Sequence record: NC_031120.1
DNA: 64,000 nucleotides
Reading direction: 5' to 3' (one strand)
The position numbers and the translations under genes were made by a program. Shown here one piece after another: positions 1-29,983 of this stretch. Positions within the stretch are counted from its first letter, which is position 1. Each line of letters opens with the position of its first letter. Under the pieces are notes generated by a model that saw nothing but the letters and a program-made list of their open reading frames with translations, ran no database searches and had not been told where the DNA came from.

Positions 1-498
1 ATGACCACGATTGCGTTCGACGGCAACATGCTTGCTGCCGATTCCCAAACCACGCAAGGCGATTATCGGTTGTCTCTGCACGCCCAGAAAATTTTCCAGC
101 CTGCGGTTGGGGAGAACTGGCGGGTGATGGGTCAGCGCGTCGTCGCCTATGGCGTTGCCGGTACTCTCCAGGGGTGGCATTACCTTCGGGAGGCATTGTC
201 CGGGTTCAATGGCCTGTGCGTGAACACCACCTTCCCAAAAGGCGTGGTGGTGAGTTACTTGGTCGTCACCGAGGACGGTGAGGTCTACGCCGGGGGTCAG
301 TACGAGAACGACAACGTCGCCTGGCTGACCAAAGTCAGTGCACCGATTGCCGTTGGTAGCGGTGCGGAGTTCGCCATGGGTGCGATGGCACAAGGCGCTT
401 CCGCTGCACAAGCCGTGGAAATCGCTGCTCGGTTCGATGTCAATACCGGCGGGGCTGTCCAGGTATTACACCCGGTCAAAAGTCCAATTACAGATTAA
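1..498 (+). CDS. Ntn-hydrolase (HslV/proteasome beta-like) peptidase
   Basis: N-terminus MTTIAFDG..LAADSQ (Thr nucleophile exposed after Met removal) and a GSG-x-x-A-x-G-A motif near the C-terminus. Confidence 0.7.
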   Translation: MTTIAFDGNMLAADSQTTQGDYRLSLHAQKIFQPAVGENWRVMGQRVVAYGVAGTLQGWHYLREALSGFNGLCVNTTFPKGVVVSYLVVTEDGEVYAGGQYENDNVAWLTKVSAPIAVGSGAEFAMGAMAQGASAAQAVEIAARFDVNTGGAVQVLHPVKSPITD

Positions 499-546
499 CC
501 CAGTGCTATGCTGAGAGGCGCACGTTGGTTTCTCTGAAAGAATTTC

Positions 547-623
547 GGGGGTATGGCGCAATTGGCTAGCGCAGTGGATTCCAAATCCGAAGGTTCAGGG
601 TTCAAGTCCTTGTGCCCCCGCCA
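547..623 (+). tRNA. trnW: tRNA-Trp (CCA)
   Basis: Acceptor GGGGGTA/TGCCCCC, anticodon loop TT-CCA-AA, T-loop TTCAAGT, encoded CCA. Confidence 0.93.
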
Positions 624-872
624 CTTTCCAATCGCTCGATGACCCGGTTATCCATCTGGCCCGAGTGAACAACACCGCATAGCCGCAAGGCGTGAGTGAT
701 GGATTGGAAAAGCAGATGGCAGAAGTTAAAATTATAACGGGACGTAACGGTGTGCAGTACGCCGAGCGTAACGGGGCAGTCTGTCGGTTAGACATGCCCA
801 AAAAAGCATTTAGCCAACAGGTAAGCGAGTCACCGCGGACGACACAAATTTGTCAATCGGCGGAGAATCCTC

Positions 873-1094
873 ATGAACCTGTATTTGCTAGAACGACTGG
901 ACGACGTCGGTTACGACGAGTTTGATTCCATAGTCGTTGCCGCACCTACGGTGCAGGCCGCGTGTGCAATTCGTCCACGAGGCGGATGGATACCAGACAA
1001 CCAAGCCGAAGACGGGGTTACCCTGAGGATAGCGTTGATAGGTACAACTCATCTGCCCACTGGCATCGTTCACACGTCGTTCAACGCAGGCTGA
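873..1094 (+). CDS. small phage hypothetical protein
   Basis: 73-aa ORF (MNLYLLERLDDVGYDEFDSIVVAA), GGAG upstream, followed by a UUCG hairpin. Confidence 0.6.
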   Translation: MNLYLLERLDDVGYDEFDSIVVAAPTVQAACAIRPRGGWIPDNQAEDGVTLRIALIGTTHLPTGIVHTSFNAG

Positions 1095-1100
1095 ATAAAC

Positions 1101-1118
1101 GGCGAACTTCGGTTCGCC
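1101..1118 (+). other. stable hairpin (processing or termination) just upstream of tRNA-Cys
   Basis: GGCGAAC-TTCG-GTTCGCC; no U-tract. Confidence 0.6.
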
Positions 1119-1122
1119 AACC

Positions 1123-1198
1123 GGGACAATGGCTCGAGCGGTAAGGCGAGTGATTGCAAATCACTTTCAGGTCGGTTCGAATCCGGCTTGTCCCTCCA
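1123..1198 (+). tRNA. trnC: tRNA-Cys (GCA)
   Basis: Acceptor GGGACAA/TTGTCCC, anticodon arm AGTGA-TTGCAAA-TCACT, T-loop TTCGAAT, CCA. Confidence 0.95.
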
Positions 1199-1337
1199 AC
1201 ACATCTCGCCCGATGTGAATCTCTAAACAATAAAAACCCGTAGAGCCTTTCGGGGGTGTAGCTAGTAGGAGTGTTTGTGCACTCTACGGTCTTTCACTCC
1301 TGGGCGCTGGCTCACCCACCCAAAGGAAAATTGAATC

Positions 1338-1763
1338 ATGTTTAGTATCTTCAAAAAACGCGCTAACCGTGCTATGTCCGAAATCAAAAAATTCGACAAA
1401 CGCGACCTGGCTGAAGCCGTGGTTAACGCCGCTTACCTGATTGCTTACGCAGACGGCGAGCTGGAATCTTCTGAGAAAGCGAAAATCGATCAGGTGCTGC
1501 GCGCTAACCCAGTTCTCTCTAACTTCCAGTCTGAGCTGAACTCTATCGCCTCCACCATCATCGCCCAGCTGGAAGCGGACATCGATATCGGCCGCCGTGC
1601 TGCTCTGCGTCAGATTGCTGACGTGAAAGGCGACCAGCGCGAATGTGAAGACGTCCTGGACGTTGCAGTGGCTATTGCCCGTGCTGATGGCGAAATCGAA
1701 CCGGCTGAAGAAGCGATGCTGAAACAGATCGCCGAAGCGCTTGGCCTGCGTTACGACGCCTAA
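1338..1763 (+). CDS. terB: TerB-family (tellurite resistance B-like) protein
   Basis: A-A-x-L-I-A-x-ADG-x-x-x-x-x-E motif and C-terminal A-x-A-DG-E-I-x-x-x-E-x-x-x-L-x-x-I-A-x-x-LG; AAGGA RBS. Confidence 0.85.
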   Translation: MFSIFKKRANRAMSEIKKFDKRDLAEAVVNAAYLIAYADGELESSEKAKIDQVLRANPVLSNFQSELNSIASTIIAQLEADIDIGRRAALRQIADVKGDQRECEDVLDVAVAIARADGEIEPAEEAMLKQIAEALGLRYDA

Positions 1764-1766
1764 GCC

Positions 1767-1946
1767 ATGAAGCTGAAAACCAAGCTGTACATCGCGGCCG
1801 CACTGTTACTGATGTTGCTTGGCAACTTCGTAGGCAGGGCATTCACGTTGCTTGCCTACTTAGCTGTAATCGGCGTGGTAGCATATCTGGTGTGGCCACT
1901 CATTAAGACTTACGCTGCCAAGGCAAAAGCCAAGGTCAAGTCTTAG
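1767..1946 (+). CDS. 59-aa membrane protein with two hydrophobic helices (absent from ORF track)
   Basis: MKLKTKLYIAAALLLMLLGNFVGRAFTLLAYLAVIGVVAYLVWPLIKTYAAKAKAKVKS; starts 3 nt after the terB stop. Confidence 0.7.
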   Translation: MKLKTKLYIAAALLLMLLGNFVGRAFTLLAYLAVIGVVAYLVWPLIKTYAAKAKAKVKS

Positions 1947-1955
1947 TGAGCTTAG

Positions 1956-1977
1956 TGGGGAGGTCGTTCCCTCCCCA
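1956..1977 (+). terminator. GC-rich hairpin after the membrane-protein gene
   Basis: TGGGGAGG/CCTCCCCA stem followed by pyrimidine-rich sequence. Confidence 0.5.
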
Positions 1978-2010
1978 TTGTTCCATTCTCTTTTAAAAAT
2001 AATAGGTACA

Positions 2011-2847
2011 ATGATGAGAAAGGTTCTTTTTGGTTTGTTAGCAGCACTGAGCTTCACAGCGATGGCTGGGCAGGACGTGGTCATTACCACGGGGCAGCAA
2101 GGACTGACGTACAACTCAGTCTACGGGGTAAACCTGGCAGGGGCGCTGAATGAGTTCGGCAATACGGCCCGTGTCATTCCGTCTAAGGGGTCTTCGGACA
2201 ACCTGGATAAGATTTCAAGCGGTGAAGCCCAGATCGGGTTCACGCAAGCTGATGCCTTCCAGTTCTGGCGTCAGCAACATCCGAACGAAGCGCAGAAGGT
2301 TGACATCGTTGGTCAGCTGGGACGCGAGTGCGTTTGGGTCGCCGTCAAGAAAGACGGTAAGATTAGTTCAGCTGGGGATTTGACCAACGGTGCGAAGATT
2401 GCCGTCGGTGACCCTGACTCTGGCTCATACGCCAGTTGGCAGTATCTCCAGTTGCTGGTTAAAGAATACTCGAAAGCTGAAACCTACGCTAAAGGTGGCA
2501 TTCGTTCCCTGTCCAAAGTAGCGACGGGTGAGTACGATGCGTTCCTCTGGGTATCGGCTCCGGGTAAAAGCAACAAATTCCTCGATGCGGTTAATCAAGA
2601 AAGCTCCGGCTTGAAGCTGATTGACATGAGCACCTGGAACGTCAACGACAAACTGCCTAACGGCCAGTCGGTCTACACCAAAGAATCTGCTGAGACTGAC
2701 CAGTCTGCGTTCTTCGGTAAGAAGGTTGATGTTCCTTGCACCACCACGCTGGTTGTAGCCAACACAGACGCCGGTGATGATCTGCTCGAAACCGTCTCGA
2801 CCATTCTCCTCAAAAACACCTCGCGTGTCATGGGGACGAAGAAGTAG
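2011..2847 (+). CDS. TAXI-family TRAP solute-binding protein (periplasmic)
   Basis: Signal peptide, then TG..G.TY, S.GS.DNL..I..GEAQIG..QAD and KIAVG...SGS motifs; start placed at ATG 2011. Confidence 0.85.
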   Translation: MMRKVLFGLLAALSFTAMAGQDVVITTGQQGLTYNSVYGVNLAGALNEFGNTARVIPSKGSSDNLDKISSGEAQIGFTQADAFQFWRQQHPNEAQKVDIVGQLGRECVWVAVKKDGKISSAGDLTNGAKIAVGDPDSGSYASWQYLQLLVKEYSKAETYAKGGIRSLSKVATGEYDAFLWVSAPGKSNKFLDAVNQESSGLKLIDMSTWNVNDKLPNGQSVYTKESAETDQSAFFGKKVDVPCTTTLVVANTDAGDDLLETVSTILLKNTSRVMGTKK

Positions 2848-2849
2848 TT

Positions 2850-3460
2850 CAGAACTACGGTGCACGTCTGAGCCTGGTACCGTGGGCAACATCTTCTCAG
2901 GTGGGCTGGTATCCCACCTGAAACGGTAATAGCAGAGACCCAGCGCATACCCGTAAGCCGTTGGTAGCCGGTTACATAAAGCACTATCCTTTCGAGGGTA
3001 GGTAACTGACCGTTCACACTCTTACTCGATGAGCGTACTTATATATGCAAGGACTAATTGAGTTGGTACGTAAGCTCGTCCATTCGCTTAAAGCGTTTTG
3101 GCGGGACTGCCGACACTGGTCACTTGCTCATTACTGGCTTACAGGCGGTGGGAAGTCCCGTGAGGGTTCCCGATACAGACATCTTCCTGCGTGGAATTAT
3201 ATGTCCGTTTCGGACAGGCCAGCACCGGACTGCTAATCCGCCTTGCTAACGCCTGTAATACTACAATCTGATATCCTTTAATGGGATTAAGTTCCCAGTG
3301 CGATAGAGCGGCTGTGTGCCGTTGAGATTACGATTCCTGCGGGAGCAACCGTAACTCGAAAGTAATGTGATAGCGGGTGGTGCTTGGAGAGGTTCAGACC
3401 GGAGGATACTCTGGCTCAACCGAAGAAGTCCATCACCCGCATTCTCACCAAAAGTCCTTT
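2850..3460 (+). ncRNA. candidate large structured non-coding RNA, family unassigned
   Basis: No credible ORF; many 6-10 bp stems containing G-U pairs, with UUCG/GUGA loops (see findings). Boundaries and strand approximate. Confidence 0.5.
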
Positions 3461-3618
3461 TACAGATTTATTCCCTATATATGTCGATGATAACAAAGCG
3501 AATTCTAACGAATGAGTTTTCTTTGTTATATGTCGGGGTACCGGTTAAGGTTATATATTGCGTTCTGCTGCGTGCGGTTGCGAATAAACTACAACCGGTG
3601 CTCCGGCACCCGTACAAT

Positions 3619-3703
3619 GGCAGATTACTCAAGCGGCAACGAGAGCAGACTGTAAATCTGTGGCCTTCGGGCTTCGTAGGTTCGAGTCCTTCATCTGCCA
3701 CCA
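3619..3703 (+). tRNA. trnY: tRNA-Tyr (GTA)
   Basis: Acceptor GGCAGAT/ATCTGCC, anticodon CT-GTA-AA, long variable arm, CCA. Confidence 0.95.
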
Positions 3704-3962: not shown

Positions 3963-3968
3963 CACAGC

Positions 3969-4046
3969 GGACGTGACCTTCTGAAAAGCACCCGGCGGGT
4001 GGTTAGAGTAAGAATCAGTTCTGCCTTAAATGGCAAGCGTCCACCA
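3969..4046 (+). ncRNA. tRNA-sized, ACCA-ended element without a canonical anticodon loop
   Basis: GGACGT/GCGTCC acceptor-like stem followed by ACCA; T-arm-like TGCC-TTAAAT-GGCA. Confidence 0.4.
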
Positions 4047-4052
4047 CACAAT

Positions 4053-4118
4053 GGTTTCTCCCAGTCGGCCTGGGGTCGTCTATAATGGACGAAGTTGGTT
4101 CGAATCCAGCAGAAACAA
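4053..4118 (+). pseudogene. degenerate tRNA (pseudo-tRNA, nominal anticodon TAA)
   Basis: GTTTCT/AGAAAC acceptor, TCGTC/GACGA anticodon stem, canonical T-arm GTTGG-TTCGAAT-CCAGC, no CCA. Confidence 0.5.
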
Positions 4119-4119
4119 G

Positions 4120-4191
4120 AACAACGCTGTTAAGTTGGTTAACACTCGACTCATAATCGAATATTCGCTGGTTCGATTCCAGCCGTTGTTC
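4120..4191 (+). tRNA. tRNA with CAT anticodon (Met or lysidine-Ile); CCA not encoded
   Basis: AACAACG/CGTTGTT acceptor, GTTA/TAAC D-stem, CT-CAT-AA loop, GCTGG-TTCGATT-CCAGC. Confidence 0.85.
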
Positions 4192-4200
4192 GCTCTTTCA

Positions 4201-29913: not shown

Positions 29914-29938
29914 GGGGTCTCCTTGAAAAGATTAACGC

Positions 29939-29957
29939 ATATATATTATCTTGGTGG
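29939..29957 (+). promoter_or_regulatory. early-promoter-like motif
   Basis: ATATATATTATCTTGGTGG. Confidence 0.6.
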
Positions 29958-29983
29958 AGTAACCAAGAAGGAGTATTTAATAA

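Follow-up and report, generated by a model that had tools for sequence, protein, structure and literature searches.

What occupies the roughly 770 nt without an annotated gene that lie beside the tRNA array of Erwinia phage vB_EamM_Caitlin? We analyzed a 64,000-nt stretch of sequence record NC_031120.1 (hereafter, the window), which is the left end of the genome of this phage, a Machinavirus of the family Chimalliviridae. Window positions 2848-3618 matched the Caitlin genome KX397365 in blastn with 100% identity and identical coordinates. The Caitlin GenBank record has zero features between the end of a TAXI-family gene (2847) and tRNA-Tyr at 3618, which bears out the gap noticed in an earlier reading of the letters alone (the sequence-only reading). 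That reading proposed that the gap encodes a giant, structured, non-coding RNA. We found a conserved element consisting of three domains (D1 to D3), within which a small open reading frame (ORF) is embedded (Table 1). In our assessment, there is about an even chance (probability roughly 0.5) that the element, at 2897-3444, is one plus-strand RNA of ~550 nt that is both the messenger of a small protein and the carrier of a conserved three-domain fold, and that is matured together with the tRNA operon. Such a combination of coding and structured RNA matches no described RNA family, and its assignment to a new class is tenable.

Distribution and covarying structure of the element

By blastn, 47 phage records match the stretch, with identities of 80 to 86% in close Machinavirus relatives and ~68% in Machina-type phages; in Seoulvirus (SPN3US and others), the match covers a 230-nt core only. 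MAFFT alignment of the entire intergenic regions showed that the element is conserved end to end in SPN3US too, and the whole element is present in SPAsTU. Homologues were also collected by motif scanning, done twice independently in IMG/VR and once in metagenomes, which added environmental contigs and a fourth, more divergent clade (phiEaH2/Stratton/Asesino and Wellington/Kwan/SNUABM_11). Nine of 16 metagenome pattern matches and two viral ones were rejected as false positives located in coding regions. The deduplicated set comprised 31 distinct sequences, forming 19 clusters at 97% identity.

Altogether, the element is carried by ~55 SPN3US-like jumbo phages and related metagenome contigs, in one copy each, and the carriers are of the Machinavirus, Seoulvirus, phiEaH2/Asesino, and Wellington/Kwan types. 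GenBank holds 47 to 52 of these phages, each with a single copy per genome, and IMG/VR and metagenome contigs hold more; all are SPN3US-like chimalliviruses. A covariance model (CM) of the 5' domain, R1, gave a single hit per true locus and no hit in any of 34 control loci. A motif scan of 185,579 bacterial and archaeal genomes returned 24 matches, approximately the number expected by chance, and nhmmer supported none of them beyond a short stretch the size of the pattern. Zero matches were obtained by blastn against 5,426 E. coli genomes, which indicates that no host RNA gene gave rise to the element. The element family is narrow and belongs to one phage lineage. The proposal of a large, ornate RNA beside the tRNA array of a nucleus-forming enterobacterial phage is supported, and the structure is evolutionarily conserved.

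The minimum free energy of the stretch is 3.4 to 3.7 standard deviations below that of shuffled sequences (z of -3.4 and -3.7), a modest difference that is alike on both strands; energy alone therefore proves no structure and assigns no strand. Evidence for structure beyond chance comes from covariation rather than folding energy. Using RNAalifold on 20 representatives, we obtained 74 predicted pairs, 34 of which have compensatory changes. From this result we built a curated structure of 89 pairs and tested it on alignment A1, in which 93.3% of cells are paired compared to 82.2% in column shuffles. Double changes were detected in 39 of the 89 pairs (26.7±2.2 in shuffles, with 0 of 500 shuffles as high), and the covariation score was 0.350, compared to 0.047 to 0.070 when partners were slid by 1 to 3 columns. 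G-U and U-G combinations numbered 135 compared to 14 A-C and C-A combinations, an excess that rules out the minus strand and fixes the plus strand. We conclude that the covarying three-domain RNA structure exists and that it is formed by the plus strand. Covariation among homologues had been named in the sequence-only reading as a check on its stems, and most of these (P1, P4a/P4b, Hb, Hd, and H8) are conserved with compensatory changes. Additional long-range pairings from a column scan (e.g., AGCCGG/CUGGCU and the P1 loop with the H6 loop) were rejected, being wobble-only or in conflict with better-supported helices.

When D1 and a pseudoknot that we call PK1 were realigned by CM (alignment A5), 96.1% of cells were paired, double changes were present in 24 of 35 pairs, and covariation was 0.572, compared to 0.07 to 0.09 for slid partners. 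A helix TACCGT/ACGGTA had been proposed around P1, and it is not conserved; its ACGGU strand pairs instead, across clades, with the distant ACCGU that completes P2. The Machina and phiEaH2 clades have an extra hairpin 3' of the 5' strand of P2. PK1 is a new pseudoknot, absent from the earlier list of stems, and was found by scanning for runs of covarying columns. It is paired in 25 of 26 distinct sequences, with the variants GGUA/UACU, GAUG/CAUU, AAUG/CAUU, GAUA/UAUU, and GAUA/UAUC, and two of its four pairs show compensatory changes. This pairing accounts for a conserved string, YUYAYU (TTAC in Caitlin), upstream of the ORF. The P1 loop has the YUNR (U-turn) form of an anticodon loop, Y-U-(GGU, GAU, or AAU)-R-N, and the 3' strand of PK1 lies ~20 nt 5' of the start codon, directly 5' of a Shine-Dalgarno (SD)-like AGGUGA in the Machina and phiEaH2 clades.

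D2 is closed by the long-range helix LR, in which ACUUG/UAAGU is replaced by AUUCA/UGAGU, AUUUA/UAGGU, or, in the fourth clade, GCUC/GAGU. The 9-bp helix (Ha) that the sequence-only reading placed at the base of a multiloop is present and invariant in three clades; it shows zero covariation and is absent from the phiEaH2/Wellington clade, where LR is extended and other helices close D2. A helix that competes with Ha, designated Ha*, is formable in all clades (AUAGGU/GCCUGU in Machina and GAAGGU/ACCUUC in the fourth clade). The small hairpin listed earlier as AGCA/TGCT is not conserved in that form; its conserved form is AGC/GCU around CGGA/UCCG (He).

In D3, the long terminal hairpin H8 (helices 14 and 15 of the curated RNAalifold structure) is 94 to 98% paired, with double changes in 11 pairs. 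The H8 of Wellington and Kwan (L027 and L028) is strongly diverged (GGAGGGGAUG...CAUCCCCUCC), with the stem kept and the GAAGAAGUCC loop lost. The ACCA at 3450, considered earlier as a possible 3' end, is found in Caitlin only and is not conserved. The stem TTACG/CGTAA (H7) does form a hairpin, as proposed, and it is variable. We observed at least two unrelated sequence versions of H7 that cross clade boundaries and do not follow phage phylogeny (Caitlin compared to L009, L017, L004, and L021), and the Seoulvirus version is carried by the Machinavirus pSal-SNUABM-04 and by L017, a pattern that suggests recombination or an exchange of modules inside the element. Judged by invariant columns, nucleotide conservation is highest in D3, which is non-coding, and at unpaired positions of loops and junctions.

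The embedded open reading frame

The sequence-only reading took the gap to be non-coding, and this part of its proposal did not hold. The ORF at 3045-3236 is intact in the 20 homologues first examined and in all later ones, with lengths of 55, 57, 61, 62, 63, or 64 codons. Frame 1 has 0 stops in 20 of 20 homologues, and the other five frames have 1 to 7 stops in all but one case; in dinucleotide shuffles, the frame stays open with a probability of 0.03 to 0.20 per clade. All changes in ORF length are multiples of 3, and the distance from a conserved Trp codon to the stop is always 114, 117, or 120 nt despite the presence of hairpin loops of changing length in this part. In the Machina clade, substitutions at codon positions 1, 2, and 3 number 12, 20, and 58. 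Rates estimated by the Nei-Gojobori method for the N-terminal ~24 codons, a stretch without conserved RNA structure, give a ratio of nonsynonymous to synonymous substitution (dN/dS) of 0 to 0.4, with dS up to 1.5. These comparative data indicate that the ORF is a selected small coding ORF, conserved and inside the structure, and that the element is not simply non-coding. The sequence-only reading had itself listed a conserved, functional ORF at 3045-3236 among the outcomes that would overturn its proposal, and at the level of sequence comparison this outcome was observed.

The ATG of the ORF is invariant in the family, and the 12 nt 5' of the AUG are AU-rich and predicted to be unpaired in most representatives when full-length sequences are folded. 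Caitlin-clade phages have a promoter-like motif whose last nucleotide is the G of this ATG. The motif, TTAC-N10-20-TATATATG, has three sites in the window compared to 0.01 expected, with the pattern having been derived from two of them. Middle and late promoters of phiKZ have TTAC near -24 and a TATG in which G is +1 (PMC4666361), and the motif fits this geometry, with a spacing of N12-15 at the sites 3460-3483 and 29938-29962. We rejected the general explanation that the conserved ATG is merely a TATG start of the phiKZ type, which may apply in the Caitlin clade. Phages of the phiEaH2/Wellington clade no longer have the T at -3 but retain the ATG together with a good SD, and what is conserved across the family is thus the start codon.

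The same evidence bears on the possibility that the element is an ornate RNA like ROOL or GOLLD that is purely non-coding, its ORF being untranslated and open by accident or for RNA reasons. Such an RNA would be expected to have the size, GNRA hairpins, pseudoknot, invariant loops, and adjacency to a phage tRNA array that we observed, and it would be compatible both with a Caitlin-clade motif that would start the transcript at the G of the ATG and with a peptide tail that is predicted to be disordered and is near-neutral. It does not explain why every homologue keeps the frame open with in-frame indels only, why N-terminal codons without conserved structure show low dN/dS and a third-position excess, or why the ATG never varies, not even in phages that have lost the TATG promoter core and have a good SD. 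We consider a purely non-coding RNA quite unlikely.

The ORF and the fold share many of the same nucleotides. The 5' strand of LR corresponds to ORF codons 25-31, and its 3' strand lies beyond the stop codon; the last 40 codons traverse D2, where the frame remains open across four hairpins, and the start-proximal ~24 codons, which encode most of an amphipathic helix, lie outside conserved structure and are under purifying selection as protein. He has a 7-nt loop, and its three 3'-most bases are always the UAA stop. Because the ORF runs inside D2, a ribosome reading it must open all of D2, leaving D1 and D3 untouched. Over the C-terminal 40 codons, dS drops to ~0.1, as expected where RNA pairing constrains synonymous sites, and dN/dS rises to 0.1 to 1.4 (Nei-Gojobori).

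If the element were an ordinary small-protein gene with long untranslated regions structured for mRNA stability or export only, and with no function of the RNA itself, the evidence for the ORF, the accessible start region, and the confinement of the family to one phage lineage would all be accommodated. The placement of the highest conservation in the non-coding D3 and in unpaired loops and junctions would be unexpected for generic stabilizing hairpins, and the constraint on synonymous sites in D2 also speaks against this explanation, which we regard as decidedly unlikely.

The predicted product is a small peptide for which AlphaFold2 gives a single helix at residues 2-33 (predicted local distance difference test score 77 to 88) and a disordered tail (residues 36-59 predicted disordered). 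The helix is amphipathic and net positive, and it contains no membrane-spanning segment (maximum 19-residue Kyte-Doolittle mean ≤0.96). The peptide corresponds to PHROG 26199, listed by PHROG as of unknown function. A profile search of 5.8 billion proteins returned 7 clusters only, all from SPN3US-like carrier phages, and a Pfam search with the peptide gave no match. Being a single helix, the AlphaFold2 model gave no informative result when compared with the PDB using Foldseek.

Annotation of the ORF locus is inconsistent. Machina-type records call a 64-codon ORF, and the records of Caitlin, SPN3US, and most others call nothing. A 69-codon version that starts at an upstream in-frame ATG is annotated in ChrisDB (L003, 1636-1845), and a different ORF, running across D2 and D3, is annotated in Lh1B (L014, 1598-1786). 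The 63-codon ORF is thus a gene missing from the Caitlin annotation and called inconsistently over ~50 GenBank records.

Table 1. Features of the element and its surroundings, in window coordinates.
Feature	Position	Strand	Remarks
Core element	2897-3444	+	~550 nt; D1 to D3 and embedded ORF
D1	2897..3013	+	From CM alignment A5
P1, TCAGGTGGG/CCCACCTGA	2897-2921	+	Hairpin; 7-nt YUNR (anticodon-loop-like) loop at 2906-2912
P2, ACGGU/ACCGU	2923-27/3009-13	+	Closes junction with P3, P4a, and P4b
P3	2940-46/2957-64	+	Inside P2 junction
P4a, CGGTTAC/GTAACTG	2968-75/3002-08	+	Encloses P4b
P4b, CTATCC/GGGTAG	2984-89/2996-3001	+	Inside P4a
PK1, 3' strand UACU	3023..3026	+	Pairs with P1 loop GGUA at 2908-2911
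ORF	3045..3236	+	ATG 3045 to TAA 3234-3236; 63 codons (55-64 in relatives)
D2	3116..3299	+	LR enclosing Ha, Hb, Hc, Hd, and He
LR	3116-3136/3277-3299	+	Long-range helix; covaries
Ha	3139-47/3250-58	+	9 bp; invariant in three clades
Hb, GGGAA..CCC-GTGA-GGG..TTCCC	3150-3171	+	GNRA hairpin; covaries
Hc	3184-87/3193-96	+	Hairpin in D2
Hd, TGTCCG/CGGACA	3203-07/3211-15	+	Covaries
Ha*, ACAGGC/GCCUGU	3214-19/3251-56	+	Competes with Ha for the same 3' strand
He, AGC/GCU around CGGA/UCCG	3221-23/3245-47 and 3226-29/3237-40	+	Conserved hairpin
H6	3307-3323	+	Hairpin in D3; conserved UGUGU loop; compensatory changes
H7, TTACG/CGTAA	3324-3357	+	Hairpin in D3; variable; unrelated versions across clades
H8, GCGGGTGGTG/CATCACCCGC	3369..3444	+	Long terminal hairpin of D3 enclosing CCGGAG/CTCTGG; internal loops CUUGGAG / GAAGAAGUCC nearly invariant
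Hairpin ACGGUGC/GUACCGU	2857..2883	+	Directly 3' of TAXI stop; from sequence and alignments
Promoter-like TTAC-N14-TATATATG	3022..3047	+	Caitlin clade only; TTAC doubles as PK1 strand
Promoter-like TTAC-N12-TATATATG	3460..3483	+	Conserved 3' of element in three clades; precedes tRNA array
Promoter-like motif	29938-29962	-	28 nt upstream of a gene start with strong SD and ATG; divergent intergenic region

Genomic context and proposed mechanism

In every genome that bears it, the element lies inside a tRNA region, and the array next to it in the window was recovered by both ARAGORN and Rfam. The flanks vary by clade, with the TAXI gene, gp2, or tRNA-Cys upstream and a promoter, a ParB-like gene, or a tRNA downstream. 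In three loci of the phiEaH2 clade (L018, L025, and L023), a tRNA starts <10 nt 3' of H8, and in L017 the element begins ~30 nt 3' of tRNA-Cys. The next transcription unit, the tRNA array, begins at the promoter-like motif at 3460-3483, which thereby delimits the element on the 3' side. Scans for sigma-70 promoters and intrinsic terminators gave nothing on the plus strand, a result that says little because SPN3US-like phages use their own polymerases. With no upstream promoter recognized, the element is probably co-transcribed with the preceding genes or the tRNAs. Directly 3' of the TAXI stop, some hairpin is found in every clade, with unrelated sequences; we excluded it from the core, and it is possibly a boundary or processing element.

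This context raises the question of whether the locus holds one RNA or three independent neighbors, namely, a riboswitch- or operator-like leader (D1 and PK1), the small gene that it controls, and a separate stable RNA (3' D2 and D3) cut from the tRNA precursor in the manner of phage T4 species 1 and 2. PK1 beside an SD-like element occupies the usual place of a translational operator, one clade has a tRNA directly next to H8, and both the unrelated H7 versions found across clades and the diverged H8 of Wellington and Kwan show modular evolution. Against three neighbors, the covarying LR physically ties ORF codons 25-31 to 3277-3299, and D1, D2, and D3 always occur together and in the same order, the modules never being apart in 37 loci. 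We judge an arrangement of independent neighbors to be unlikely.

Under the reading of the element as one RNA that is both messenger and fold, several steps can be proposed. Members of the Chimalliviridae transcribe in a ribosome-free compartment (reviewed in PMC13282480), which makes co-transcriptional attenuation by a leader peptide unlikely. As transcription and translation are separated, the RNA would fold first and be translated later, which fits an exposed start site between two folded domains. We suggest that the element is made within the transcript of the tRNA region, that tRNA-processing enzymes generate its ends wherever tRNAs adjoin it, and that its fold is completed in the ribosome-free compartment before any ribosome is encountered. 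The start codon would then be presented between D1 and D2 on the AU-rich stretch predicted to be unpaired, and D1 with PK1 may tune initiation there. Passage of a ribosome would melt and remodel D2; because each ribosome must melt D2, translation and the native D2 fold would be mutually exclusive, and competition between Ha and Ha* is a plausible switch. D3 and the refolded D2 may have a function at the RNA level, e.g., in binding the peptide or a host factor or in serving as a scaffold for either.

A more specific version of this mechanism is a new class of translated ornate RNA that is folded in the phage nucleus and in which cytoplasmic translation through D2 flips Ha to Ha* or the reverse, with the state set by its own peptide or by a tRNA that competes with the P1 loop for the linker triplet (ACU, AUU, or AUC). 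We hold this version to be quite unlikely; if true, it would link phage tRNA supply or translation capacity to an activity at the RNA level.

Several observations weigh against a single RNA that is both translated and folded. It is geometry only that suggests a regulatory role for D1/PK1 and a switch between Ha and Ha*, and Ha lacks covariation. In the Caitlin clade, the motif at 3022-3047, if active by phiKZ rules, would produce a transcript without the start codon, and dN/dS in the last 40 codons is ~0.7 to 1.4, which indicates that the open frame alone, not the sequence of the tail, is maintained there. Phages of the Caitlin and Seoulvirus clades have a weak SD. The conserved peptide residues W-x-L-x-H-Y-W are encoded where the LR helix lies, and their conservation may stem from the RNA. 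Finally, our literature searches found no expression, end-mapping, or proteomic data for the element.

Large structured RNAs of bacteria and phages without known function (ROOL, GOLLD, OLE, etc.) are rare, and each new class has proved informative. Constraint on the same nucleotides both as codons and as helices is unusual, and the element is a natural system for learning how one molecule can accommodate both ribosomes and an elaborate fold. The element may, in addition, help to explain why large non-tRNA RNAs are frequent in phage tRNA clusters. Direct testing is feasible, as SPN3US-like phages include isolates reported on E. coli, and amber mutants of SPN3US have been described (PMC5105663).

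We also made several observations on the surroundings of the element. The left genome end (window 1-2847) encodes a homologue of HslV-like peptidases, a TerB-like protein, and a TAXI-family TRAP solute-binding protein among tRNA-Trp and tRNA-Cys, a gene set that is unusual for a phage. Between the promoter-like motif at 3460-3483 and tRNA-Tyr lies a conserved leader hairpin (3490-3529; AUAACAAAG/CUUUGUUAU, then AUGUCGG), which covaries with its Seoulvirus version, AUACCAGAG/CUGUGGUAU; Machina-type phages have a ParB-like gene in its place. Within the tRNA array, a tRNA-Met (CAT) at 4119-4193 was called by ARAGORN and by Rfam (47.6 bits) and is missing in the Caitlin GenBank feature table. The 155-nt gap that precedes it (3963-4118) received zero tRNA calls from ARAGORN or from Rfam at E ≤ 1. 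It contains a T-arm-like GGTTCGAATCC at 4097-4107 and an acceptor-like pairing (4054-59/4111-16), and it may be a degenerate or unusual tRNA.

Comparison with known RNA classes

We compared the element to known RNA families using cmscan against Rfam. Across the whole window at the gathering threshold, no known family was detected inside 2848-3618, and a search of 2700-3650 at E ≤ 10 with permissive filters gave two chance-level hits only, bxd_5 (11 bits) and archaeal RNase P (8.5 bits). RNase P RNA, whose bacterial and archaeal models include the P4 pseudoknot and conserved regions I-V, was rejected, the single 8.5-bit hit comparing to a gathering score of 84 bits and covering P1 only. Group I and group II introns, which have a catalytic core and sit within a host gene between exons, were rejected as well, with no Rfam hit and with flanks that differ between clades. 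These results agree with the sequence-only reading, which had been unable to assign the stretch to transfer-messenger RNA (tmRNA), RNase P, or an intron. The models of ROOL (RF03087) and GOLLD (RF01998) gave no match at the gathering threshold or at E ≤ 10. Of the earlier suggestion that the element is a new member or a new class of giant RNA, the new class is tenable with no Rfam family found, and homology to ROOL or GOLLD was not found. Literature searches on SPN3US, jumbo phages, Chimalliviridae, and ROOL/GOLLD turned up no description of the element.

ROOL and GOLLD (for context, see 10.1101/2024.12.08.627333) are large ornate RNAs with many helices, found in phages and prophages and adjoining tRNA genes. 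The element is similar to them in its length of several hundred nucleotides, its many helices, and its neighborhood of phage tRNA genes. It differs from them in that it is found in enterobacterial jumbo phages, carries a conserved ORF, and matches neither covariance model.

The tmRNA (ssrA) also has an ORF flanked by pseudoknotted structure, with a pseudoknot shortly 5' of the first codon and the stop in a hairpin. A tmRNA-like or tRNA-mimicking RNA acting on ribosomes would account for these features, and the P1 loop has the look of a Thr (GGU) or Ile (GAU) anticodon loop. The element differs in that it lacks a tRNA-like domain, having no T-arm and no acceptor stem such as tmRNA forms from its 5' and 3' ends. 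The short tag frame of tmRNA has no start codon and is entered by trans-translation, and the ORF of the element uses its own AUG start for 55 to 64 codons. ARAGORN called no tRNA or tmRNA within the element, Rfam gave no tmRNA or tRNA hit in 2700-3650, and the ACCA is limited to Caitlin. We therefore rejected tmRNA as a candidate, and we consider any RNA of this kind extremely unlikely.

The hok/Sok mRNAs have a small ORF, conserved long-range pairing, and YUNR loops, and the element, with its ORF of ~60 codons, long-range helices, and YUNR U-turn loop, could similarly be the messenger of a type I toxin in which a folded mRNA and the YUNR loop silence a toxic peptide until processing. The peptide, however, is not a membrane helix, having no transmembrane segment and being amphipathic and net positive. 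In predicted folds the start site is open rather than sequestered, the YUNR loop pairs in cis (PK1), and no antisense RNA was seen, though none was looked for. A hok-like toxin messenger is very unlikely.

Operators and riboswitches with a pseudoknot adjacent to the ribosome-binding site, such as the thrS operator (an anticodon-arm mimic), SAM-II, and preQ1-II, resemble the junction domain D1, whose anticodon-like loop pairs with the linker by the SD. PK1 abuts the SD-like element in two clades, and the region around the AUG is predicted to be open in the folds. The structure of the element differs in running through and past the ORF, and it has no Rfam match; we know of no ligand or protein partner of D1. 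The tRNA cluster of phage T4 encodes species 1 and 2, which are stable non-tRNA RNAs of ~120 to 140 nt without an ORF that are released by tRNA-processing enzymes. Like them, the element would be a non-tRNA RNA within a phage tRNA cluster; it is larger and has an ORF, and a relationship in sequence is not expected.

Dual-function RNAs include RNAIII/hld of S. aureus, SgrS/SgrT, and SR1/SR1P. As in these, we observed a conserved ORF with coding signatures together with covariation that includes untranslated parts, and the likeness extends to a structured RNA of up to ~500 nt, a small peptide, and an ORF lying partly in functional helices. The element is different in being phage-encoded and located in a tRNA operon, and its ORF is longer, with two thirds of it within a closed RNA domain. 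Unlike for dual-function regulatory RNAs, we know of no base-pairing target for the element. Overall, the comparison suggests that, among known systems, the element would be functionally closest to dual-function RNAs such as RNAIII.

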